Sequence record: NC_070963.1
Length of the DNA: 64,000 nt
Strand: one strand, 5' to 3'
Positions 1 to 52,500 of the stretch are shown here, in pieces. The notes beneath the pieces were generated by a model, which was given only the letters and a program-made list of their open reading frames with translations, did no database searches and was not told the origin of the DNA. Numbering within the stretch: position 1 is the first letter of the stretch; every line of letters starts with the position of its first letter. Both the position numbers and the translations under genes were made by a program.

Positions 1-146
1 TACGTTGCGATTCCCGCACTTGCATTTTTCATTTCTGCAATGGTGTCCTATAATCTAATGCCAGAGAGAACACCTCAACACAACTCTACTGTGTCTGGGT
101 CTTCTGGTGAACTTAAATGCACTTCGTCTTGTGTGGTGAAAGAACA

Positions 147-344
147 ATGATTAAACTATTTCAGTTTCTATTGACTGGTTGTTGGCATTCGTGGGAAGTA
201 TTTGAGAAAAAACAAATCTTTGATACTGGTACAAAAATCACGCACGATCAAGAAGAAGTTCCACTTCCTATTGCAACAAAATACATTATGCGTTGCAAAC
301 ACTGCGGTGAGATGAAGGTCTTTGATACAATGAAGGTTTGGTAA
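147..344 (+). CDS. hypothetical protein with CxxC motif
   Basis: ORF track 117..344; ATG at 147 more likely; RCKHCG motif; its TAA overlaps the next ATG (TAATG). Confidence 0.6.
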   Translation: MIKLFQFLLTGCWHSWEVFEKKQIFDTGTKITHDQEEVPLPIATKYIMRCKHCGEMKVFDTMKVW

Positions 345-400
345 TGGACTTCCCAGTATTCTTAAACAAGTGGATAATCGGATTTAAATCGATTAAATGA
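344..400 (+). pseudogene. truncated original 5' end of the gene now at 1342..1674
   Basis: Translates MDFPVFLNKWIIGFKSIK*, matching MDFPVFLNKFIIGNKYL at 1342; start coupled to the upstream stop. Confidence 0.8.
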
Positions 401-448
401 TGGTAGATAAATAATAGTGCTCTAATGTGTTCGCATCCATAAGAGTGG

Positions 449-474
449 AAAAGGTGTCTTCGGGCACCTTTTCT
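449..474 (+). terminator. intrinsic terminator-like hairpin with C(UUCG)G loop
   Basis: AAAAGGTGTC-TTCG-GGCACCTTTT followed by T-rich tail. Confidence 0.7.
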
Positions 475-476
475 TG

Positions 477-484
477 TATAAATA
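477..484 (+). promoter_or_regulatory. T4-type late promoter
   Basis: Exact TATAAATA 31 nt upstream of the endonuclease ATG. Confidence 0.8.
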
Positions 485-514
485 GTATTGCGAACACAAT
501 TTAGAAGCAGAACT

Positions 515-1273
515 ATGGTAAATCCTAATAGGTTTTATACTTACGCATATCTACGGGAAGATAGAACTCCTTATTATATTGGTAAAGGTAAAGGAAATAG
601 AGCATTTTCTTCAAATAGGACAATAAACAGACCAAAAGACAAATCAAGAATAATATTTCTCAAACAGAACCTAACTGAAGCAGAAGCATTCAAGCACGAA
701 AAGTATATGATTGCCGTGCTTGGTAGAAAAGATTTAGGAACTGGAATACTTCATAATAGAACTGATGGTGGAGATGGTGCTTCGGGTTCTGTTAGGAGTA
801 AAGAATCCAAAATAAAATGTAGTGAATCAAAGAAAGGTGAAAAGAATCCTCAATACGGTAAACGAGGTAAGAATTCTCATAATTATGGGAAATCTCCTTC
901 TGAAGAAACCAGAAAAAAATTAAGTGAGAGGCAAAAAGGTGAAAAGAATCACAATTATGGCAAATCTTTTTCCGAAGAAACCAGAAAAAGAATGAGTGAA
1001 GCACGAAAAGGTGAAAACAATCCTATGTATGGTAAATCACGTTCAGAAGAAAGCAGAAAAAAGCAAAGTGAATCACTTAAAGGTAAATATGGTGGAGAAA
1101 AACACTATCTCTACGGTAAATCACCTTCAGAAGAAACTAAAAGAAAAATAGGTGAGACAAATAAAGATAAAAAATGGTGGAACGATGGCAAAGAAAATAC
1201 TAAATTTACTGAAGAATGTCCTGGAGAAAATTGGGTTCCTGGTCGTGGAAAGAAAAAACTATGTGTCACCTGA
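515..1273 (+). mobile_element. free-standing GIY-YIG (Seg-like) homing endonuclease with NUMOD3-type repeats
   Basis: YTYAYLRED..YYIGKG catalytic motif, conserved E and HN.T.GGDG, repeated GEKNP/HNYGKS.SEETRKK DNA-binding modules; ATG at 515 preferred to TTG at 488. Confidence 0.9.
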
Positions 1274-1320
1274 CGAACTGGCACGAGAAGACTTGATTTT
1301 TATTGAAATTTTGGTATAAT
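1263..1320 (+). promoter_or_regulatory. early promoter cassette (22-bp palindrome plus TATAAT)
   Basis: GTGTCACC-TGACGA-ACTGGCAC at 1263-1284; TATAAT at 1315-1320. Confidence 0.7.
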
Positions 1321-1341
1321 ATCTGTACTACAAGAATAATG

Positions 1342-1674
1342 ATGGACTTTCCTGTATTTCTAAACAAATTCATAATCGGCAACAAGTATCTTCGGTACAC
1401 CAGTTTTGGGTGTTGGTTCCGTCTCATCAATCATTCTAATTGGAGAATGGACGACCACCAAAGATACTGGGACTTTTGGTTGAGTATAAATCGTGGGTAT
1501 GATGATATGAACTATCAACATAAGTTTAGAGAGTTCTGGGGTAAAAACGCAAAACCAGAACGCATTGTGCTATCCAAAGAAGACTTTGATGCTTTGGTAG
1601 AAAAACTCAACGAACCACCACAATATAACGAAAAGATTGCGAGAGTGTTACAACGAAAAGCGCCTTGGGACTAA
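1342..1674 (+). CDS. hypothetical protein with DUF1778-like C-terminus (RIVLSKEDFDALVEKLNEPP)
   Basis: ORF track 1303..1674; ATG at 1339/1342 follows the promoter and matches the remnant at 344. Confidence 0.65.
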   Translation: MDFPVFLNKFIIGNKYLRYTSFGCWFRLINHSNWRMDDHQRYWDFWLSINRGYDDMNYQHKFREFWGKNAKPERIVLSKEDFDALVEKLNEPPQYNEKIARVLQRKAPWD

Positions 1675-1699
1675 ATACACTATCATATGCAGTTGGGAT

Positions 1700-2134
1700 A
1701 TGGAACTGCTTCAAGAAGACGATATATTGCTTCGTAGAAAGGCAAAGAGAGTTGATAAGATTGATGATACTGTAAGAAACATTGCTGCGAATATGATACG
1801 CACAATGATTGAAAATAATGGTATTGGTCTGGCAGCAAATCAAGTTGGAATACTCAAACAAATCATTGTGGTTCTTGTCAATAATGAACCAAAGGTAATG
1901 ATAAACCCAGAGATACTTGATTTTTCAAGAGAATACTGTGTAATGAACGAAGGGTGTTTATCATTTCCTCAACAATTTTATGATATTCAAAGACCAGAAA
2001 AGGTCAAGGTCAAGTATCGTGGACTAAATGGACATCCTATGATAGAATGGTATGGAGGGATTGAAGCACGTTGTATCCTTCACGAAATCGACCACATTAG
2101 AGGAATTGTATTCACGGAGAAACTAAATGGTTGA
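1700..2134 (+). CDS. def: peptide deformylase
   Basis: All three PDF motifs: GIGLAANQVG, EGCLS, HEIDH; ATG at 1700. Confidence 0.95.
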   Translation: MELLQEDDILLRRKAKRVDKIDDTVRNIAANMIRTMIENNGIGLAANQVGILKQIIVVLVNNEPKVMINPEILDFSREYCVMNEGCLSFPQQFYDIQRPEKVKVKYRGLNGHPMIEWYGGIEARCILHEIDHIRGIVFTEKLNG

Positions 2135-2288
2135 AGTCACACCTAACGAAGACGGGTCATATGAGATTACTTGGGATGAAAATGACCCACAAGAATCAAT
2201 GTTCAATACTTGGACGGAAGAAGATTTTATTCGGGTTATAGAACAATATCTTGATGAACTTATCATAAATAACGAAAAACCCCTATGA
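2127..2288 (+). CDS. small hypothetical protein, paralogous to 7857..8042
   Basis: Hand-translated MVEVTPNEDGSYEITWDENDP...; shares N.DGSY...WD..DP with 7857..8042. Confidence 0.6.
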   Translation: MVEVTPNEDGSYEITWDENDPQESMFNTWTEEDFIRVIEQYLDELIINNEKPL

Positions 2289-2542
2289 TTACTTTCAGGC
2301 AGTTCCTAAACCTTGTAGAAGGTAAAAAGAAAGAACTAATTCACGCTTATCTTAAAGGAAGGGAAGAAGCATCAGAACCTAAAGTAGTGAATTATGGACA
2401 ATCTGAACCAAACTCACCAGAAAGAGCAGCACAAATTAAAGCAATGATGAAAGATCAAGGTGGTGGTGCGATTCGTAAGGCACAAAATCAAAGACTAAAA
2501 CAGGCAAAAAAAGCGGCAAAAAGAATTATGAAAGATCAATGA
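2285..2542 (+). CDS. putative capsid-internal protein (CTS-like N-terminus)
   Basis: MITFRQFLNLVE resembles the T4 capsid targeting sequence; CATAAATA late-type promoter about 20 nt upstream; basic protein. Confidence 0.5.
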   Translation: MITFRQFLNLVEGKKKELIHAYLKGREEASEPKVVNYGQSEPNSPERAAQIKAMMKDQGGGAIRKAQNQRLKQAKKAAKRIMKDQ

Positions 2543-2813: not shown

Positions 2814-3397
2814 GTATTTCACAAGGATTGGTAATGGATGCTGATGAAGAACCTGGATTTGAGATTCTTCATCTATCATTTCGTAAAAAAGAATCAGAAG
2901 CATTTTCTGGTGCTCCTATCAATTATTACATTGGAAACATTGTATTTCGTCTGACTGATGAAAGTGCTGTTGGTCGTATGCAGTATTACTTGGAAGAAAA
3001 TGAGAAACTTCGTGTAGCACCTGATGAAGATTTGCTCAATAGTTATTATGAAGACCTTCACTTTGACTTTGATTCTGATGACGAAGAAGGTGTAGTAGAT
3101 AAAGAAGACGGACAAAAGTATTATCCAGTGAATATCATCAATAAAAGTGGCATTAAGGAAGAAGATGTGTTCATTTATGCATATCGTCGTAATATGATGC
3201 CTCTTCACGACTTTATTCAGTATCACGAAAAGTTTGATGTGTATCAAATGAGAGAATACTTTCAAGATACTCCAGTGGTTCGTGGTATTATACAGTATCT
3301 TCAAGATATGAAGGACGGTAAGGAAAATCCAAGTCGCACTGTGTATTATGAACAGTTTCTCAATACACTTGAAAACCTTTGTTGGTGGTGGGATTGA
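2810..3397 (+). CDS. acidic hypothetical protein
   Basis: 195-aa ORF with normal phage codon usage. Confidence 0.7.
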   Translation: MSISQGLVMDADEEPGFEILHLSFRKKESEAFSGAPINYYIGNIVFRLTDESAVGRMQYYLEENEKLRVAPDEDLLNSYYEDLHFDFDSDDEEGVVDKEDGQKYYPVNIINKSGIKEEDVFIYAYRRNMMPLHDFIQYHEKFDVYQMREYFQDTPVVRGIIQYLQDMKDGKENPSRTVYYEQFLNTLENLCWWWD

Positions 3398-3424
3398 TAA
3401 ATAAGTAAAAAGTAGTCAATAAGA

Positions 3425-5380
3425 ATGGCATTCACGAAGATTGCTGCCGCTGGTATTGGAAGCACAGGAACAGTTACATTAGAACGACTTATTGTAACTG
3501 GAAGCATTGATACTCCTGTGATTACTGGAGCAGCATCTACGGCAAATGTAAGAGCAAATAGTTTAGTTGTATCTGGAGTTTCGACTTTTGGTAGTGTTGT
3601 AGCAACCACAGGAACTTTTAGTGGTAATGTCAGTATTGCTGGAACTCTGACTTATGAAGATGTCACTAATATTGATTCGGTTGGTCTGATTACTGCTAGA
3701 AGTGGTGTAGTAGTAAATACAGGAACAGCAACAACAGCATTAGTTGTTAATGGTAGTGCAAGAATTACTGGTATTTTGACAATTGGAACCAGTTCTGTAA
3801 CTCTTGATGGAACGAATAATCAAGTTAATGTAGGAACTGGTGTTACGATTCATCACACTAATGGTGTTCAAGTTGGTGGAAATACAGTTCATTCAACTGG
3901 ACTTACTGTTAATCAAGTGAATGCAATTGGTATTATTACAGCATCAAGTTTTAGAGGTGATGGTTCTCAACTGACTGGTATTGCTGCTACGACGAATGTA
4001 AGAACTAATAGTCTTGTTGTTTCTGGGGTTTCTACTTTTGCTGCAGGTAGTGTTAGTGCTCCTTCTATAAGTCCAACAGGGGACAGTAACACAGGACTAT
4101 TTTTTCCTGATGCTGATACTATAGCAATTGCTGAAGGTGGTGTTGAGGCATTAAGGATTGATAGTAGTTCTAATATTGGTATAGGAACCAATGCCCCAAC
4201 TACAAAACTCACAATAACAGATGGTGTTGCTCCTTATGCGGCAACCACTGGCGATTTAATTCAACTTAAAAGAGGTGTATCAAATGGTAATGATACAACT
4301 TCTGCTACTGGAATTTCATTTGCCAACAATAGTAATGGATTCCGTATTGCTTATGGTGGAACAAATGATAGATTGAGGTTTATAGATGGCGGTGCTATTG
4401 AATGTCTTTCTCTATTGAATGGTGGAAATACTGGAATAGGAACAGTAAGTCCAAGAGTAAAACTTGATGTAGGCAATGGAAAACTTTTAGTAGTACAAAG
4501 TGGGACTCCTACAGGAAATTATAATTATGGAGTAAATACACACGTTGCTTCAGGTGCTGGAGGAATGCAGGTTACTAGTGGAAGCAGTTATAGTTATTTT
4601 GTTGGCAATTCTACTGATATAATATTAGGTTCAGATCAAGGATCTACTGGAATTAAAGTTCAAGTTTCAAGAACTTGTGGAGACAATTCTTTAGTTATAA
4701 CTTCTTCTGGACAGGTTGTTGCAAATTATAACTCAACAACTGGAGTAGTTAATTCTTTTGGACATGGTGGTTATTATGGATTAAGTGCAAATAGTAACTC
4801 TACAGCATTAGCAGATCAAAGGTGCTCTTGGTTTTTGCGTGGTTCTTTAGAAGGTACTAATAATGAATTAGGAAACTCTGTATTATTAATTCAAAATACA
4901 GGAGGAGCTGCAATTAATATTGGAGATCTAATAAAAGGATATAGAGGTTCTTCACTCATATTCCGTGTATCTGGTGGTGATGGAAGTGTTAGGAACAGCA
5001 GTGGAAGTTATGCTGCTATTTCTGATGAAAGAATTAAACAAGATATTGTTGATGCAGAATCGCAATGGAATGATATTAAATCAGTTCGTGTTAGAAAATT
5101 TAAACTTAAAGAAAATGTTGAAACTTATGGCGAATCTGCACCAACATTTATTGGTGTTATAGCCCAAGAATTAGAACAAATAAGTCCTGGACTGGTTGAT
5201 CAAGCAAAATTAAAAAATGGTTCTTCGGATCCAGAAAGCATTAAATCTGTAAAATATAGTATTTTATACATGAAATCAGTTAAAGCTCTTCAGGAAGCAC
5301 AACAACGTATTGAAACTTTAGAATCACAAGTTTCTTTACTTATAAGAAAAGTTGAAGAATTAGAAAATAAAATTATTTGA
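3425..5380 (+). CDS. tail fibre-like protein with C-terminal peptidase S74 intramolecular chaperone
   Basis: G/S/T-rich beta repeats (NSLVVSGVSTF twice, GIGT motifs); C-terminal SDERIKQDI...GVIAQEL...KYSILY...coiled coil; GATAAATA late-type promoter at 3396. Confidence 0.85.
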   Translation: MAFTKIAAAGIGSTGTVTLERLIVTGSIDTPVITGAASTANVRANSLVVSGVSTFGSVVATTGTFSGNVSIAGTLTYEDVTNIDSVGLITARSGVVVNTGTATTALVVNGSARITGILTIGTSSVTLDGTNNQVNVGTGVTIHHTNGVQVGGNTVHSTGLTVNQVNAIGIITASSFRGDGSQLTGIAATTNVRTNSLVVSGVSTFAAGSVSAPSISPTGDSNTGLFFPDADTIAIAEGGVEALRIDSSSNIGIGTNAPTTKLTITDGVAPYAATTGDLIQLKRGVSNGNDTTSATGISFANNSNGFRIAYGGTNDRLRFIDGGAIECLSLLNGGNTGIGTVSPRVKLDVGNGKLLVVQSGTPTGNYNYGVNTHVASGAGGMQVTSGSSYSYFVGNSTDIILGSDQGSTGIKVQVSRTCGDNSLVITSSGQVVANYNSTTGVVNSFGHGGYYGLSANSNSTALADQRCSWFLRGSLEGTNNELGNSVLLIQNTGGAAINIGDLIKGYRGSSLIFRVSGGDGSVRNSSGSYAAISDERIKQDIVDAESQWNDIKSVRVRKFKLKENVETYGESAPTFIGVIAQELEQISPGLVDQAKLKNGSSDPESIKSVKYSILYMKSVKALQEAQQRIETLESQVSLLIRKVEELENKII

Positions 5381-14291: not shown

Positions 14292-14614
14292 TCACTGTAA
14301 CCGAACTGCTAGATTTTCTCACCAAAGCACAGAAACTTTCTATTCATGATGTAACCTTCCGTCAAACTGATGAAGGTTATGCTATCACTCTGCGTGATGA
14401 TTGGTATGATGATGGCAAATGGTCTAATAAAACTGTCTTCATCACTAACGATGGAGAATCCACTTGGGAGAAAGGAGATTATGATTTTGAGACAATGGAT
14501 GGCATCCTAGGCGCGAAACTTGTAGAACAAAAACAAAAAGAAATCAAAGCACAAAAGCGTAAAGAATTGATTGAAACTCTCACGCCAGAGCAAAGGGAAC
14601 TGCTGGGGGTGTGA
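14288..14614 (+). CDS. hypothetical protein
   Basis: ORF track. Confidence 0.6.
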   Translation: MITVTELLDFLTKAQKLSIHDVTFRQTDEGYAITLRDDWYDDGKWSNKTVFITNDGESTWEKGDYDFETMDGILGAKLVEQKQKEIKAQKRKELIETLTPEQRELLGV

Positions 14615-14669
14615 CAGTTGAGGAACTGTCATACACCCCCCTTGTGCTCCCTCCAGAATCCTCTATAAT
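14611..14669 (+). promoter_or_regulatory. early promoter cassette
   Basis: GTGACAGT-TGAGGA-ACTGTCAT; TATAAT at 14664. Confidence 0.75.
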
Positions 14670-14690
14670 AAGCACATACGCAACCAACCC

Positions 14691-15041
14691 ATGACTACCA
14701 CCTTCGCTGATTACGCCGCCCAGCAAGAGGCACGTGAGAGCATCTCCGCTGCTGTTCTGAAGCATACTCTATCACTCTGTGAGGCACTTCGTATGAATGC
14801 TCCGGATGATTATGACTATGTGATTGAATCTGGTCGCAAGTATCATAAGATCATTATGATTGATTCTGGTAAAGGCAGAAGTGTTCACGCTTTTGTTGAT
14901 AAGAAGACTGGTGAAATTTATAAACCAGCATCGTTTCGTGCTCCCGCAAAACACGTTCGCTATGATTTGCGTATCATTGAACAAAGGGAATGGGTTCTTG
15001 CTAATGCTGATTGGGCGGGCAGTTGGTTATATCTGCGATGA
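14691..15041 (+). CDS. conserved phage hypothetical protein
   Basis: GRKYHKI...SVHAFVDKKTGEIYKPAS..APAK..RY motif typical of T4-like phage early proteins. Confidence 0.7.
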   Translation: MTTTFADYAAQQEARESISAAVLKHTLSLCEALRMNAPDDYDYVIESGRKYHKIIMIDSGKGRSVHAFVDKKTGEIYKPASFRAPAKHVRYDLRIIEQREWVLANADWAGSWLYLR

Positions 15042-15111
15042 ACATGACCACAACACATAAACTTATTTTTGTTTCTTCTTTTTTTATTTTTATGAATTGG
15101 GGTGTTAGATT

Positions 15112-15567
15112 ATGTCAGTTATTATTCACAGTGGATATGGATATCGCAAACGCCTCTGTGAGGATGTTTCCTGCTGGTTTCTGAATAAGTTTCTGCCGCG
15201 CCATAAGATTCACCTAGAGATTGTGCATCGTGGTCTGAAACGTGATTGTGTTTATGGGTATTGTGACTTTGTAGGAGAGTCTTATCGTCCTAGAGAGTTT
15301 CTGATTGAATTGGATACTTATATGCATGAGGATTTGTATATACAAACTCTTTTGCATGAGTTGGTGCATCTGCGACAGTGGGTGGTGGGTTCTCTGCGAC
15401 AGAAAAGAGGAAAAATGTATTATGGTAAAGAATGTGTGGAGGATATTGATTATTGGCATCAACCTCATGAGATAATTGCCAGGAGAGAGGAAATATTGTT
15501 ATATCAAAAATACATGAAAACAAAAAAATCTACTTCACGATGTTTTGTTAATAGACTTTGTAAATAG
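15112..15567 (+). CDS. putative HExxH metallopeptidase-like protein with replaced C-terminus
   Basis: TLLHELVHLRQW and downstream PHE motif; 3' end duplicated at 16315-16431. Confidence 0.7.
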   Translation: MSVIIHSGYGYRKRLCEDVSCWFLNKFLPRHKIHLEIVHRGLKRDCVYGYCDFVGESYRPREFLIELDTYMHEDLYIQTLLHELVHLRQWVVGSLRQKRGKMYYGKECVEDIDYWHQPHEIIARREEILLYQKYMKTKKSTSRCFVNRLCK

Positions 15568-15662: not shown

Positions 15663-16313
15663 ATGGAAAAATATTACACTTACGCATATTTGCGTGAAGA
15701 TAGAACTCCTTATTACATAGGTAAAGGTTGTGGAAATAGAATTAACGAAAATAAAGGAAGACCTTGTAAAAAACCAAAAGATAAATCCAGAATTATATTT
15801 CTTAAAAAGAATTTGACTGAAGAAGAAGCATTCAAACACGAAATCTATATGGTTTTTGTCTTTGGTAGAAAAGATTTGGGAACAGGCATTCTTCATAATA
15901 AAACTAATGGTGGTGATGGAGTTTCTGGATTGATTCACTTACCAGAATCAAAAATTAAAATGGCAATAACAAAAAATACAAAATATTGGAATAATGGTGT
16001 AAAAACTGTTAGAAAAATTGATTGTCCTGGTGAAGGTTGGGTTGAAGGTAGATTAAATATAAATTATCATAATTGCAGAAAAGGATTATATTGGTGGAAT
16101 AATGGAGTAGAATTAAAAGTTTCTAAAGAGTGTCCTGGTGAGGGGTGGAATAGAGGAATTGGAAAACTAATCAATAGAAAAGGTGTCGGTAAAAAGTATA
16201 ATGAAAATGGATTTTCAACAAGGGGATTGTATTGGTGGAATAATGGGATAAAAAATACTATGAAAAAAGAATGTCCTGGAGAAGGGTGGGTAAGAGGTAA
16301 AATTAAACTTTAA
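15663..16313 (+). mobile_element. free-standing GIY-YIG homing endonuclease, paralog of 515..1273
   Basis: YTYAYLREDRTPYYIGKG catalytic domain nearly identical to the first copy; three WWNNG...CPGEGW.RG repeats. Confidence 0.9.
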
Positions 16314-17962: not shown

Positions 17963-18115
17963 CACAACTGTATCGTATTGAAGAACTGTTCACAAACGGT
18001 TGGGAAACGATTGATGAATCTGCAACTCAACTGACAAAAGAACAGTGTGATGAGAAAATTCAATATTATCTTGGATGTGGTTATAATCCAAATTATCTTC
18101 GCGCTGTTCCTGATC

Positions 18116-18394
18116 ATGGAATTTCATCATAAAGCACCAGATGGACATGCATACGAATTTGAAGAGAACTTCAAGAGAAACATTACTGCAATTTGGATTA
18201 TTAATCACAGTCACTTCAACTATTGTGGTAAGTCTCATGTTTCTAGCATTTGGGGATTTTTCAACTCAAAAACAAAAACATATTATTCACCAATCAATTC
18301 AAAAACCATTGGATCAGCAGTGGATATAAATCTCACTACTCCTTATAGTGCAATGATTCCCAAAGCATCACCACTGGATTCATTTTTTGTATGA
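18116..18394 (+). CDS. hypothetical protein
   Basis: ORF track 18047..18394; ATG at 18116 more plausible. Confidence 0.6.
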   Translation: MEFHHKAPDGHAYEFEENFKRNITAIWIINHSHFNYCGKSHVSSIWGFFNSKTKTYYSPINSKTIGSAVDINLTTPYSAMIPKASPLDSFFV

Positions 18395-18594
18395 GATCTG
18401 ATCAATTTGCAGAAGGACTTGAAGTCTCTTATCGACACCTGACTGGAACCATTCATTTTATCTGTCCCAGTTACATTACAGTATGTGTCAGAACTTTTGA
18501 AGATCGTGTCAAAAATGTTTGTGTTCTGGTGCATCGTAATAATTGGAAGAATGTGAATCTTTTGAATGGAAATCGAAAGGATTATGAAAAATAA
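18391..18594 (+). CDS. hypothetical protein
   Basis: ORF track; ATGA overlap. Confidence 0.55.
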   Translation: MRSDQFAEGLEVSYRHLTGTIHFICPSYITVCVRTFEDRVKNVCVLVHRNNWKNVNLLNGNRKDYEK

Positions 18595-18758
18595 ATCATC
18601 TTTATGGAGAATCATCGCAAAATCATTAGGTGAAAAATCAGGAAAGAACAATCAAGAAGCAGATCAGATTGCACTGGTTCGCTTGTTGATGTTTCTTTCC
18701 ATTTTTATTACAAACTGTTTTATTGTGTATGGCGTTTTGAGAACTCATCATTTTCCGA

Positions 18759-21279: not shown

Positions 21280-22158
21280 TCAAGAACTGCAATTCCCCGT
21301 GTCACAATGAGTCGTGTTGAAAGAGGAGAAACCTGGAAAAGTGTTGGTGAAAAACAAACCAAAAAAGCACAAATTGATCCTAAGTCAAAGTTCTTTGATC
21401 CAGTAAAACAAAAAGAATATAAGAGACAAGTTGCATATTGGGGAAATAAAGATAGAACCGTAATATCAGGTGCATCTCCAAGAGATCGTAATATTACCAT
21501 TGCAAGATCTGCTGCAAAGAAAGCAGGATTCAGTGGTGGTGGAAATAAGAATCGTTTTGATTTTAATGCACCAAACAAAGATTATACGACTTATCCAACA
21601 GATAAGTATCCTGACGGATTTGAACATCCAAGACATAATACTCAGGTGGATACTCAGATTGAAACAATACCATCAGGAAGAAAAGCAGCAGCATTATCTA
21701 GTGGAACAAAAAGACCAGACTATGTTGCAAAGGCAAATAAAACTGCTGTTCGAAGAGTTCCTTCAACAGATAGAATTGCAAGAAATATGAAAGAACTTCG
21801 CCGTCGTGTTGTCACAACTGGAGGTCAAGAAAGAAATCCAGTTCATAAGGTTGATTTTCTTCCACGCAGAGATGATTATGGTTATAAGGGAGAATTGGAT
21901 AAGTATTCAATGAAAGTTGGTCGAAACTTTGTTCAGGCACAAAAAGATCTTGCAAAAAATCTAAAAAAAGCAGGTGCAAATCCAGGTGATGTGATTAGTG
22001 GAAATCCATCACCAATGAGAAAAGGAGAAAATCCACAATTAGGAATTGATAAGAGAGCAAAGATGTATCAGAAAACATTTGGTAGAAGAGTTCAGGGATT
22101 AGATCCAACTGGAAGAGTCAGAGGAATGATCGGTGCAGTTGGTGGAGATGTCAAGTAG
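21142..22158 (+). CDS. basic putative capsid-internal protein B
   Basis: MKTFQQFQE-S; N-terminal 50 aa and C-terminal domain similar to 20315..21145. Confidence 0.6.
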   Translation: MKTFQQFQESAAIARGALRLLKAASRAGRVARTADGGRRVTSAARASRTAIPRVTMSRVERGETWKSVGEKQTKKAQIDPKSKFFDPVKQKEYKRQVAYWGNKDRTVISGASPRDRNITIARSAAKKAGFSGGGNKNRFDFNAPNKDYTTYPTDKYPDGFEHPRHNTQVDTQIETIPSGRKAAALSSGTKRPDYVAKANKTAVRRVPSTDRIARNMKELRRRVVTTGGQERNPVHKVDFLPRRDDYGYKGELDKYSMKVGRNFVQAQKDLAKNLKKAGANPGDVISGNPSPMRKGENPQLGIDKRAKMYQKTFGRRVQGLDPTGRVRGMIGAVGGDVK

Positions 22159-22214
22159 ACACCTGATCAACTGTCACAACACCCCTCCCCCTGCCCCTAC
22201 AAGACCCTTATAAT
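22156..22214 (+). promoter_or_regulatory. early promoter cassette
   Basis: TAGACACC-N6-ACTGTCAC; TATAAT at 22209. Confidence 0.7.
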
Positions 22215-22420
22215 ACAGAGGTAGTCACAACACCTCTTATGACTGACGTTGAGTTCTTTGAAATGACCGAACGCATGAAACAGTTCGGTGGTTCATTTGT
22301 GATTGCTCTTTCTTATGCATTCCGAAGAGCAGATGCATTTAATCGTCAACGGTTATTGAATGCTTTTCCTGATTATGTTGAACAGTACGGTCCTTCTGGT
22401 GAGTTTGTGAAGAACTGATT

Positions 22421-22738
22421 ATGCCTGTACTTTCTTCAAGTAAAAAAAATGAGGCACTTTACCTCACTCATTCAAAATACTTTTATCAATGGATTGGAGG
22501 TCTTCCATTTGCACCTCAAGTGTATTGGAATGTCGTAACTGATGATGATGTGATTCCAGTAGTGACACATGGATATAAGAATGAAAAAAGCGCTCAAAGA
22601 CAAATTAAATCTTATATTCCGAATGTCAAGGAGTTTTGCTTGATTCATGTCGAAACAGAAGAAGAATATAATATTGAAAAAATGAAACGGATTTACCAGA
22701 TTCGAAATTTAAGAGGGAATTATGAAGACAGTCTATGA
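22421..22738 (+). CDS. hypothetical protein
   Basis: ORF track. Confidence 0.5.
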   Translation: MPVLSSSKKNEALYLTHSKYFYQWIGGLPFAPQVYWNVVTDDDVIPVVTHGYKNEKSAQRQIKSYIPNVKEFCLIHVETEEEYNIEKMKRIYQIRNLRGNYEDSL

Positions 22739-24411: not shown

Positions 24412-24638
24412 ATTGCTAATTTTTGATACAACAAAAACCACTTTTTGGATTAGACTTTTTTGAAGTCTTGTGGCAACCCATTGATTCAATTGTCTACTGA
24501 TGTATAAGTCCTAGCGAGTTCAATTCTTTTTATGAGTTTTCTAATCTGACTCTTGACCCCGTAGGAGAGTTCAGTAACGATCACTCTGAGAATTGTTTTA
24601 ACTCTATGGTATACATTAGTTAAGATTATTTATACATT

Positions 24639-24697
24639 GTGACACTTGAAAAACTGGCACAAGACCTCTTCACACCCCACTGAAACTCCTGTATCTT
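24639..24697 (+). promoter_or_regulatory. early promoter cassette
   Basis: GTGACACT-N6-ACTGGCAC; TATCTT at 24692. Confidence 0.65.
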
Positions 24698-24730
24698 AAG
24701 AGAGTCAACCACAGACACCTCAACCACATC

Positions 24731-25201
24731 ATGGCAACCAGAGGAAGAATCGGCATCGAACTCAAGGATGGTTCTGTGCTTTCTGTCTATACTCATTGGG
24801 ACTCATATCCTGAACACAATGGCAAAATCCTGGTTCAACATTATCAGAACCGTGAAGATGTACAAGAACTCATTGATGGTGGTGGTATTTCATCACTGCG
24901 GACTCGCGGCACATGGGATCATTCTTCTGCTCTTCGTGATGAGAATGGAGAGTACATTTCTGATGCTGCAGGTTATCTGAAGTATGAGAATGATCGGGAA
25001 CCTCAACCGCTCTATTATACTGAGCGGGGAGAAGAACTTGACATTCAACATACTTCCTTTGATGAGTTTGTTTCTGGCAAACTTGGTGGGGAAGAGTATG
25101 CTTACATATATGACCTGAATGGTAACTGGAAAGCATACAAGACTGGTCTGTTCTCTCATGTAGAACGTGTGGAGATTCCCAACTATGTGACAGCAGCATA
25201 A
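24731..25201 (+). CDS. conserved phage hypothetical protein
   Basis: TR..I......SVY.HWD.YP...G..L N-terminal motif and C-terminal EYAY.Y....W. Confidence 0.75.
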   Translation: MATRGRIGIELKDGSVLSVYTHWDSYPEHNGKILVQHYQNREDVQELIDGGGISSLRTRGTWDHSSALRDENGEYISDAAGYLKYENDREPQPLYYTERGEELDIQHTSFDEFVSGKLGGEEYAYIYDLNGNWKAYKTGLFSHVERVEIPNYVTAA

Positions 25202-49567: not shown

Positions 49568-52500
49568 ATGGCACAAAAAACAAATTTAAATGTAAGTCCT
49601 TATTTTGATGACTTTGACGCCGAAAAGAATTTTTATAAAGTTCTTTTTAATCCAGGAAGACCTGTACAAGCAAGAGAATTAAATAATATTCAATCAATCT
49701 TACAAAATCAAGTTGAATCTTTTGGTAGTCATATTTTTAAAGAGGGATCTGTAGTAATTCCAGGAAACTTAACTTATGATCCACAGTTTAACGCTGTTAA
49801 ATTAAATCCTACTAATTTTGGTGTAAATATTTCACTTTACATTAATCAATTTTTAGGTAAAAAAATCACAGGACAAATATCTGGGGTCACTGGAGTTATT
49901 CAAAAAATTGAAGTACCAGATTCAATTAATAATTTAGAATACATTACATTATATGTAAAATATAATGATTCGGGAGAAAATTTTTCAATTACTCCTTTTC
50001 AGAATGGTGAATCATTAGTTTCTAGTGAAAATGTTGTTTATGGAAATACTACTATTGTAGCGGGAAATCCTTTTGCATCACTTATTTCCACTGATGCAAC
50101 TGCTGTTGGTTCTGCTGTTTCTATTGATACTGGTATTTACTTTGTAAGAGGAACTTTTGTAAATGTTTCAAAACAAACAATCATCTTAGATTACTATACC
50201 AATACACCATCTTATAGAGTAGGTCTTAAGGTATCTGAAGAAATCATAACTGCAAAAGAAGATGATTCTCTATATGATAATGCAAAAGGATTCACTAACT
50301 ATGCTGCTCCAGGAGCAGATAGATTTAAAATAGGTTTATCTTTAACTAAAAAGACAATTGATAGTGTAGATAGTGATGTAGATTTTATTGAACTTCTTAG
50401 ATTAGATGCTGGACAAGTCAAAAAGTTAAACACAAATACTGAATATTCTATTATTAAAGATTATTTGGCACAAAGAACATATGATGAATCTGGAAATTAT
50501 TCAGTAACTCCTTTCAAAGTTTCTCTTCACGATTCTTTAAATAATAGACTTGGAAACAACGGATTATTTTTTAAAGACCAAAAAACTGAAAGCGGAAGTA
50601 CTCCATCTGATGATTTGATGTGTATCAAATTATCTCCAGGTAAAGCATATGTAAGAGGATATGATATTGAAAAAATTTCTACTACAATTTTAGATGTACC
50701 AAAACCCAGAGATACACAAAATGTAGACAATGTAAACATTCCATTTGAAATGGGAAGTTTACTGAGAATTAATAATATAACTGGATCTCCAAAACAAAAT
50801 GAATCTGTAGAACTTCACTCCGTAAGAAGAAGTGCATCTGGAAATCCTAGTTCAACAACTAAAGTTGGAGATGCAAGAGTTTACAATTTTAGATTAACCG
50901 ATGCTGCTTATTCATCAGCATCTACAAATTGGGATTTATATCTATACGATATTCAAACATATACAACTTTAATTTTAAATCAAGCATTATCACAATCTCA
51001 ATTACCTGCCTCATCATTTATTAAAGGAAAGAGTAGTGGAGCGAGTGGGTATGTGGTTTCTGCTGGAGATGGAACAACTACAGTTAATGTAAGGCAAACT
51101 TCAGGAACTTTTATCAAAGGTGAGCAAATCATCATTAATGGTTTAGAGTTATATCCAAGATCTATTGCAAATATTACAGTATATAATAGTGATGATATCA
51201 AACAAGTTTATCAATCTACATCTGTTTCTGGATTTACCACAGCATTTATAGGCGATTCAGTTCTATCTAAACAACTTCCTATTGGGTTTAATGCTTCTGA
51301 TACTGTTAACATTAGTGCTGGTGGTGTAGTAACTTCTCCAGGAAAGTTTTTTAACGTAATTAAACCTGGAAGTATTATCAGATATCAAACTTCAACAGGG
51401 TCTGTAGAAAACTTTAATAGAGTAACTAGTATCAGTCTAACAGGCGACTCAATGACAGTCGTAGGTGTTGCGACTGTAACTGGTGTTTGTAATGGTGCGA
51501 TTGGTGTTTCCACAAATATATCTTTCAGTATTGGCGCACCTACAATTAGAAACCTTGAAAAGGGATTTTTATATGCTGAAGTTCCAAATTCTAATTTATC
51601 ATCTATTGACTTAAATGACTCAATTTTAACATTTAGTGCTCAATCAACCAGTGCAAAATCTTCAAGCAGTCCAATTGTTTTGTCAGTTTCTGACTTTTCA
51701 TTACCAACAGGACTAACAACTGCACTATTTCAAGGATTCGATGAAGAGCGTTACTCAGTACATTATACCGATGGTACTACTCAATCATTAACTGCTGATC
51801 AATTTTCTTTATCAAATAATCAAGTTACTCTATCAAATCTCACATCTGGAAAAACTACATCGTCTATTAATGCAACATTTATTAAAAATGGAGTTCAGAG
51901 TAAAGAAAAACAATACAATAGAAGTCAAACAGTAAATGTAATTTACTCGAAGTACTTGGAGTCTGGAACTGGAATTAGCACTTCTATCAATGATGGTCTG
52001 CAATTTAATCCATACTATGGATTAAGAGTTCAAGATGAAGAGATTTCACTTAATTATCCTGATGTTGCAAAAGTTTTAGCAGTTTATGAATCACTAAACA
52101 CTTCAAATCCTTCTTTAGACACTTTATCGTTTAGTAGTGTATTGAATATTGGTGGAAATGCAATTATTGGAGAAAATATCATTGGTTCTGAAAGTGGATG
52201 TGTAGCAAGAGTTGTAACAAGATCTACAAATAGTGTTGGTATTGTATTCTTAAATTCCAATAGATTTCTTACAAATGAAAATGTTACATTTGAAGAATCA
52301 AATATTGTAGGGCAAATTGATTCAATAACTTTAGGAAGTTATAACGATATTACTAATAGATTTAAATTAGACAAAGGACAAAAAGAACAGTATTATGATT
52401 ATTCTAGAATTGTAAGGAATGAAGGAGAAACTGAACCATCCAAACGAATATTAGTTGTTTTTGATTACTTTAGTGTACCAACTACAGATAATGGTGACGT

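Follow-up and report, generated by a model that had tools for sequence, protein, structure and literature searches.

Free-standing homing endonucleases are, to our knowledge, regarded as restricted to intergenic DNA, because a gene that took one up with neither intron nor intein would be destroyed. The locus treated here, a GIY-YIG endonuclease gene lodged in the 5' end of a small early gene of Synechococcus phage S-SRM01, has its closest described counterparts in T4-type phages and fungal mitochondria. The seg and mob genes of T4 carry promoters for downstream genes (PMC2988022), and the start codons of I-TevI, segB and Aeh1 mobE are hidden in read-through transcripts and freed in late transcripts that begin inside the leader structure (PMC2988022). 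Homing with homology on one side only has been described in T4, whereby breaks are repaired illegitimately at microhomologies (Parker, Belisle and Belfort, 1999, as summarised in PMC2988022). In fungal mitochondria, mobile endonuclease open reading frames (mORFs) replace the C-terminus of a gene, as in atp6 of Allomyces macrogynus and in atp6, atp9, cox2 and nad3 of Glomus (PMC3630166).

The window, the whole stretch of 64,000 nucleotides (nt) from NC_070963.1 that was analysed, is 100% identical to positions 62001-126000 of the S-SRM01 record (MW015081.1). S-SRM01 is a 240.8-kb freshwater T4-like cyanomyovirus of the Kyanoviridae, and the locus lies in a hyperplastic early region of small open reading frames (ORFs). 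Its genes are here called gene A, gene B (the interrupted gene) and the endonuclease gene; compared loci carry L numbers, and positions are those of the window unless stated otherwise (Table 1). The ancestor of S-SRM01 probably acquired its GIY-YIG/NUMOD3 endonuclease by repair of a break that had homology on one side only.

Endonuclease-free alleles and the foreign tract

The stop of gene A (TAA, 342-344) shares bases with the ATG (344-346) of a short ORF, the stub, which appears to be the relic of the invaded resident allele. Beyond the endonuclease gene, gene B is a 110-codon ORF that begins MDFPVFLNKFIIGNKYL. The two starts form a direct repeat (344-381 and 1342-1379; 31/38 nt identical, 82%) with z = 11.6 relative to shuffles in alignments of the two endonuclease flanks. 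An earlier note, made from the letters of this stretch, had described both the coupled stub and the intact downstream gene, as found here. It had also called the differences between the copies synonymous, which is right for five of the 13 common codons, but another changes W to F. Finally, it had placed the end of similarity after ATAATCGG. This applies to the two copies, but the homology of the stub to endonuclease-free alleles runs on to 396, so that the true junction lies at 390-397 and not at 381.

Seven endonuclease-free ("empty") alleles have the S-SRM01 gene order, up0-A-B-deformylase, with a single W-type gene B coupled to gene A by TAATG (L014 and L016 from IMG/VR; L123-L126 and L128 from metagenomes). 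The gene A homologues directly 5' of the single-copy gene B are 91-97% identical in amino-acid sequence in L123-L126 and L128 and 72% identical in L014/L016, while the deformylase is 93-96% identical in L014, L016 and L126. Gene A occurs at two loci only in IMG/VR; the close empty alleles came from a metagenome scan. The isolates S-PM2, S-SZBM1 and S-CREM1 also have one copy, whose start overlaps the stop of whichever gene lies upstream and which reads ...NKWIIG(F/L)KPIKH..., like the stub. The stub matches the empty alleles at 35/38 nt and then at 14/15 (nt 39-53), as against 31/38 and 5/15 for its own downstream copy. The native relic is thus nearer to the relatives than to the inserted copy, and the gene end is duplicated around the endonuclease ORF. 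The prediction of the earlier note, that endonuclease-free relatives would carry a single stub-like copy coupled to the gene at 147-344, is borne out by all seven. Because the empty alleles match the stub 14/15 beyond the repeat, their origin by deletion between the 38-nt repeats of an S-SRM01-like allele is excluded; their W-type sequence at nt 54-162 speaks against it as well.

The closest empty allele, L126, is 92.7% identical to window 1-396 and 91.9% identical to window 1504-2253. The tract between these segments contains a putative late-expression leader, the endonuclease gene and an early promoter, and then the opening ~162 nt of a gene B of donor type; it is 84-89% identical to endonuclease loci elsewhere (L018, L139, L142, L143). 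The endonuclease is consequently polymorphic for presence at one locus among collinear relatives: the seven empty alleles, with ~92% identical flanks, stand against S-SRM01 and a second strain, L155 (ENA ERZ1744913 NODE_760). Compared over window 1-1470 and 1 kb upstream, L155 has the same stub-endonuclease arrangement at 99.3% nt identity. Two small ORFs (~600 nt) that immediately precede the window in S-SRM01 are missing from L155, which indicates ongoing gene gain or loss in the region.

The locus resembles the mitochondrial mORFs in that an intronless endonuclease ORF lies in coding sequence with one gene end duplicated, and in that the native relic resembles close relatives while the functional end has a foreign origin and differs mostly by synonymous changes (PMC3630166). 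However, mORFs replace the 3' end in frame, whereas in S-SRM01 the 5' end is replaced, so that a promoter and a start codon must come along.

Gene B varies in other ways among these phages. In marine S-PM2 (L003 2506-2998) and S-SZBM1 (L002 2506-2998), the homologue consists of two overlapping ORFs, an unannotated one of 54 codons with the conserved N-terminus and an annotated, DUF1778-like one of 126 codons in another frame; S-SRM01-type phages have a single ORF of 110 codons, in which the DUF1778-like C-terminus follows the N-terminal part without a break. L031 (IMG/VR) has two copies (2310-2642 and 4514-4850), the second of them frameshifted and beside the deformylase gene, with an endonuclease paralogue upstream.

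A chimeric gene B and joins at microhomology

Gene B is a mosaic. In sliding comparisons nt 1-140 match L018 at 26-29 of 30 positions and nt 210-333 match L014 at 24-28 of 30; positions 1342-1503 are of the donor, endonuclease-linked type and 1504-1674 of the resident type. In L018 itself an orthologous endonuclease sits upstream of the matching gene B allele. Every orthologous endonuclease found is followed by the same sequence of parts: a stop codon within the palindrome, the same promoter, and a gene start reading ATGGACTTTCC...AAA(T/C)T(C/T)ATAATCGGCAAC. This module occurs in at least six different left contexts, namely an intact gene Z (L142), a gene ending '...KLRLGR(W)' (L017, L018, L147, L148), one ending '...DEVLK' (L143-L146), one ending '...YVMSNK*' (L149-L152) and two that bear stubs. 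Such variety is the pattern expected if gene B were the homology anchor, and likely the target, and the other side were joined without homology.

At the left junction, the blastn segments that connect window 1-396 to L126 and window 390-1620 to L018 overlap at CGATTA(A). The sequence immediately to the right is a probable relic of the end of the donor's upstream gene: R-L-N-D-G-R-stop resembles the '...RLGR(W)*' found 5' of the endonuclease in L018 ('...CGATTAGGAAGATGGTGAATAAATAAT') and L147 ('...GGGTAGATAGTGAATAAATAAT'), and the TAAATA box at this left border is invariant in 32 leaders of the family. Judging from their sequences, L139 and L140 (1741-1900 in each) represent a second, independent and clearer event. 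Both have a 22-codon stub of an L027/L030-type gene B; the upstream gene and these 22 codons are 93-97% identical to the empty alleles L027 and L030 up to TGGTGGTGG, where the stub is joined via a 7-nt GGTGGTT to ~100 nt of the 3' end of gene Z, with the endonuclease module next. Gene Z is intact 5' of the endonuclease in L142. The junctions fall at nt 52 of gene B in S-SRM01 and at nt 67 in L139/L140, two independent positions that give at most an indirect hint at where the enzyme might cut. A further short ORF of 24 codons (MTKRKDYKYFDVIKHYVNYEEIEA) 5' of an endonuclease in L051 (2322-2396) matches 31/35 nt within the downstream gene (3206-3742) and may be a relic; it matches an internal stretch that is not collinear with the gene start, and its status as a third stub is left open.

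The following route would account for these arrangements. In the home genomes, the endonuclease gene lies just upstream of the early promoter of gene B, with its stop inside the promoter cassette. The enzyme would cut an endonuclease-free gene B, probably near codons 16-25. On the right, the break in the recipient would be repaired from an endonuclease-carrying genome via homology within gene B, with the first ~50-160 nt of the donor gene B copied along. On the left, gene B has different neighbours in different phages, which would offer no homology; the broken end, with the first 17-22 resident codons, would be joined at 6-7 nt of microhomology to a donor point upstream of the endonuclease. 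The old start would persist as a stub that still overlaps the stop of the upstream gene, and gene B would become a chimera whose promoter and start come from the donor. From then on, such an arrangement would have homology to empty alleles on both sides and could spread by ordinary homing.

In one-sided homology, microhomology junctions, ectopic invasion and the donor flank carried along, this route agrees with one-sided intron homing in T4, as far as the summary in PMC2988022 describes it. The T4 cases in that summary were laboratory plasmid and phage constructs with an intron, whereas the S-SRM01 case consists of natural, recurrent footprints of a free-standing endonuclease.

The endonuclease and its leader

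The 515-1273 product has six NUMOD3 stretches (Pfam E = 2.9e-39), a modular DNA-binding region. The Pfam GIY-YIG model finds no match in it, and LEM-3_GIY-YIG matches below its cut-off. The GIY-YIG assignment, also made in the earlier note and upheld here, rests on residues invariant in 31 homologues (YTY 8-10, YYIGKG 20-25, R29, E62 and N81), on the predicted fold of the N-domain, whose best PDB matches are UvrC GIY-YIG domains (probability 0.97, TM 0.51, E only 0.05), and on a match to a PHROG homing-endonuclease family (3e-17). PDB sequence searches with the single sequence and with a profile gave nothing significant, their top rows being chance matches to low-complexity or small cysteine-rich chains, and fold comparison was used in their place. 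Orthologues are 83-91% identical in amino-acid sequence with dN/dS of 0.17-0.26; they differ mainly at synonymous sites and their ORFs are intact. The gene thus appears to be under purifying selection and the enzyme is presumably active.

Like the T4-type free-standing Seg enzymes of intronless homing (SegF, SegG, SegB), the protein combines a GIY-YIG domain with modular DNA-binding repeats, is present or absent in related phages, is associated with co-conversion of flanking markers and has a likely target in the adjacent conserved gene. As with segG and gene 32, the promoter of the downstream gene is physically tied to the endonuclease gene (PMC2988022). The T4 Seg examples are intergenic, whereas the left junction in S-SRM01 lies within the coding sequence of the target, a stub is left, and start and promoter are supplied anew; moreover, the hosts here are freshwater cyanomyoviruses and the enzyme is known from its sequence.

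The predicted fold of the 114-nt endonuclease leader has an energy of -40.7 kcal/mol (z = -5.1). Within its outer stem lie a G+C-rich hairpin followed by a run of U (447-474) and, at 477-484, a TATAAATA box that resembles a late promoter. Two TAAATA boxes are invariant across the 32 leaders. RNAalifold on a MAFFT alignment of these leaders gave no structure, because the stems vary in length and sequence. Folded one by one thereafter, all 32 have the same nested architecture with differing stem sequences. The architecture is seen in window 414-516, L005 (6188-6318), L006 (17928-18058) and ~30 IMG/VR loci (L041-L119), whereby the inner terminator-like hairpin lies directly 5' of TATAAATA and the outer stem varies by locus. 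The endonuclease is probably made late in infection, to judge from the way its leader combines the TATAAATA box with a hairpin of terminator type and with a long stem over the start codon. A late promoter combined with a leader RNA structure, here deduced from sequence, recalls I-TevI, segB and Aeh1 mobE (PMC2988022), and the conserved leader looks like a late-only expression switch of the I-TevI/segB type. It may deserve a covariance model of its own.

The S-SRM01 genome is heavily colonised: it has six more GIY-YIG and/or NUMOD3 paralogues, 34-62% identical over the aligned parts, an ORF in its psbA intron and several HNH genes. The start of the paralogue at record 51291 is mis-called at an upstream GTG within its leader.

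The early-promoter cassette

The promoter cassette proposed in the earlier note is present, with TTGATT, a 16-nt spacer and TGgTATAAT, and with the endonuclease stop (TGA, 1271-1273) within the palindrome; the palindrome, however, is imperfect (a 10-nt loop and six pairs, one of them G-T). The cassette type, GACAC-N8-AACTGGCAC followed by ~35 nt, TATAAT, ~25 nt and ATG, has 13 plus-strand copies in S-SRM01 against 0.4 expected, most of them within 52-87 kb of the genome. Each is followed by TATAAT and a start codon, and the consensus reads GACA(C/G)-N8-AACTGG(C/A)AC, with all copies on the plus strand. The copy at 1263-1320 is a variant with a GTCAC left arm. The cassette is a generic early-promoter unit before many genes, comparable to the PeSLs of T4-type phages, of which it is an apparent cyanophage counterpart. 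As with PeSL cassettes (PMC2839356, PMC4122927), an inverted repeat and a sigma-70-like promoter precede many small early genes in a hyperplastic region, but the inverted repeat is an imperfect palindrome (GACAC-N8-AACTGGCAC) and not a G+C stem-loop. The exchange junctions lie outside the cassettes (left 390-396, right ~1503), both inside gene B.

The earlier note had regarded the promoter as the element's own. This particular copy is indeed found only with this endonuclease, and the same cassette (>90% identical) lies 3' of every orthologue found; its type, however, is the generic one, which also stands 3' of paralogous endonucleases. The sequence GAACTGGCAC at the 3' end of the endonuclease gene was considered as a specific link to the 3' end of gene B in S-PM2 and S-SZBM1, and was rejected as the generic cassette palindrome. 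The further claim of that note, that the element brings a recoded, probably cleavage-resistant gene start together with its promoter, is supported as regards a module that travels as a whole but not as regards a recoding built into the element: the start is a natural allele type that also occurs without the endonuclease (L022 and others).

A duplicated 3' end in gene X

Paralogous endonucleases in L046, L083, L088, L100, L102, L105 and L094/L096 are lodged in the 3' end of gene X, a convergent gene of 57 codons, for which S-SRM01 itself has the empty allele (record 24637-24810; locus L006). In S-SRM01 the stop of gene X overlaps the start of the next gene (ATGGCTGA). Where the endonuclease is present, the neighbouring gene still has beside it a relic (GAAGAAGAAAACCTAAAGAACCAATCAAATGGCTGA) that matches the empty allele exactly, and the functional end of gene X is recoded synonymously (GAAGAAGAAAACTTAAAAAATCAAAGTTGA) and overlaps the 3' end of the endonuclease in antisense. 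These loci are a phage 3'-end counterpart with, formally, the arrangement of the mitochondrial mobile ORFs (PMC3630166); replacement of a 3' end was observed with paralogous endonucleases of other phages only. Together with the gene B locus, they make the duplication of gene ends at overlapping-gene junctions a recurrent feature of the endonuclease family.

Alternative explanations

One-sided homing with a microhomology join on the other side makes the stub a product of joining where donor and recipient share no homology, and not a designed part of an element. It likewise makes the new start, as its sequence indicates, the 5' part (~162 nt) of a natural allele type (IIGNKYLRY...) co-converted from the donor phage. 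Several points weigh against it. The activity of the enzyme, its cut site and the resistance of the imported start to cleavage are inferences. Databases do not contain the actual donor, and since the closest relatives of the foreign tract are only 84-89% identical, both the 6-nt microhomology and the relic at 397-406 are judged from diverged sequences. The stub in the gene A context occurs in one lineage only (S-SRM01 and L155), so that the spread of this particular allele by homing is conjectural. In L139/L140, the right-hand boundary could not be located because the downstream genes differ from L027/L030, and the two share one junction with different stub alleles (L027-type and L030-type), of which a single event gives no simple account.

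A self-contained cassette, evolved from endonuclease, promoter and a recoded start that resists the enzyme and so permits invasion wherever the target gene occurs, would explain why the module is tightly linked and >90% conserved over at least six contexts when the rest of gene B is 47 to 72% conserved. The endonuclease stop inside the promoter cassette points the same way, as do the synonymously recoded 3' end of gene X that overlaps the 3' end of a paralogous endonuclease and the fact that invaded alleles differ most from endonuclease-linked ones at nt 39-75, where the junctions lie. However, co-conversion of flanking DNA accounts for the linkage without selection for resistance, and N-type starts (IIGNKYLRY) form a natural allele family, found also where no endonuclease is adjacent (L022, L027, L032, L033, L037). 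The endonuclease-linked allele L143 moreover retains TGGTGGTGGTAT, like the invaded alleles, and the resistance of the start is conjectural. A purpose-made resistant recoding is possible, but we regard a self-contained cassette as a rather unlikely origin of the locus. The endonuclease might instead be a passenger in a module placed by endonuclease-independent illegitimate recombination or by PeSL-like shuffling among early-promoter cassettes, with an accidental stub. The region is hyperplastic and rich in small ORFs and repeated promoter cassettes, shuffling of this kind is described for T4-type phages (PMC2839356, PMC4122927), and a comparison of L011 with L012 reveals a promoter cassette inserted before gene B without an endonuclease. 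Yet both left junctions lie away from promoter cassettes, gene B was broken twice independently at points within 15 nt (nt 52 and 67) in events that involve the same endonuclease, the right boundary is a gene-conversion tract within the gene, as homing predicts, and the endonuclease appears to be under purifying selection; a passenger role is accordingly improbable. Removal of the insert at the RNA or protein level, with the stub as a real first exon of a group I intron or intein host gene, has a negligible chance of being correct, even though S-SRM01 has a psbA intron with an endonuclease elsewhere. An Rfam scan of window 1-2400 at E <= 1 returned no intron and no other RNA family, only two sub-threshold chance matches. 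Stop codons follow the stub, gene B downstream is complete and has a promoter and start of its own, and splicing the stub to any downstream point would duplicate the N-terminus; removing the insert restores no single ORF, since the start is duplicated. There are no intein motifs, and the endonuclease lies in a separate frame behind its 114-nt leader. The description of the insert as intron-less in the earlier note is thus confirmed.

Coordinates and annotation

Table 1. Features of the S-SRM01 locus and loci compared with it (window positions unless another record or locus is named)
Feature	Position	Strand	Description
Gene A	147..344	+	65-aa small protein of unknown function; from the ORF list
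Stub MDFPVFLNKWIIGFKSIK*	344..400	+	18-codon ORF, TGA at 398-400; first 17-18 codons of resident (W-type) gene B
Left junction	390..396	+	Microhomology CGATTA(A), common to resident gene B and L018-type donor flank
Foreign tract	397..1503	+	1107 nt in place of 109 nt (gene B nt 54-162) of empty allele L126
Donor upstream-gene relic (probable)	397..416	+	Reads ..RLNDGR* in donor frame, then left-border box ATAAATAAT (407-415)
Endonuclease leader	414..516	+	Outer long stem, 414-435 with 489-516, up to the start codon
Free-standing homing endonuclease gene	515..1273	+	252 aa; GIY-YIG N-domain, six NUMOD3 repeats (~830-1180), C-terminal WWNDG...ECPG module
Early-promoter cassette	1263..1320	+	Palindrome 1263-1284, -35 TTGATT 1293-1298, extended -10 TGgTATAAT 1312-1320
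Gene B	1342..1674	+	110 aa, chimeric; DUF1778/TacA-like C-terminus (Pfam TacA1, E = 1.1e-4)
Peptide deformylase gene	1703..2134	+	Pfam E = 2.8e-43; conserved right flank anchoring synteny with empty alleles
Other cassettes	10009, 11980, 14012, 16819, 18761, 24117, 24641 (record 72009-86641); record 51993, 54646, 57330, 61531, 207136	+	Generic early-promoter type
Endonuclease paralogues	Record 14565-15116, 18053-18703, 21924-22619, 51291-51992, 77663-78313 (window 15663-16313), 205097-205663	- for 21924-22619	GIY-YIG and/or NUMOD3
Gene X comparison	L046 848-900 and 1727-1790 vs S-SRM01 record 24637-24810		Occupied and empty allele

The S-SRM01 genome paper does not mention the locus. GenBank names the endonuclease (QPX48079.1, 515-1273) 'translation initiation factor 2', probably owing to its K/E-rich NUMOD3 repeats, and begins gene B (QPX48080.1) at an internal ATG (1447), so that the duplicated start is hidden in the annotation. 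An exact look-up of the 110-aa gene B product returned no record, presumably because gene callers use that internal ATG.

Implications for homing in phages

The locus is best read as a natural trace of one-sided homing, and as such extends the known biology of homing endonucleases and is no new kind of element. No description of this sort of 5'-end rebuilding in phages was found in the open-access literature searched. Current annotation does not show stubs of 17-22 codons or chimeric genes such as these, which can mislead phylogenies of the affected genes.

A broader proposal, which we put forward tentatively as the less probable interpretation, is that the endonuclease family has a general, selected route into compact phage genomes with no intergenic space, landing at overlapping-gene junctions with a replacement gene end. 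Both neighbours would then stay intact and the occupied allele would be immune, whether the replacement is a 5' end with its promoter, as here, or an antisense-overlapping 3' end, as in L046-type loci. If true, viral coding sequence would be open to endonucleases by a route that needs neither intron nor intein.

The loci described here represent a natural bypass of the intergenic limit on free-standing endonucleases, in which the donor supplies a new gene end and the overlapping neighbour stays intact owing to the relic of the former one. They are evidence from nature, down to the exact junctions, of one-sided homing with joins at microhomology, a process known in T4 from constructed laboratory substrates, and one-sided homing explains how an endonuclease can move between phages whose variable regions are not collinear.

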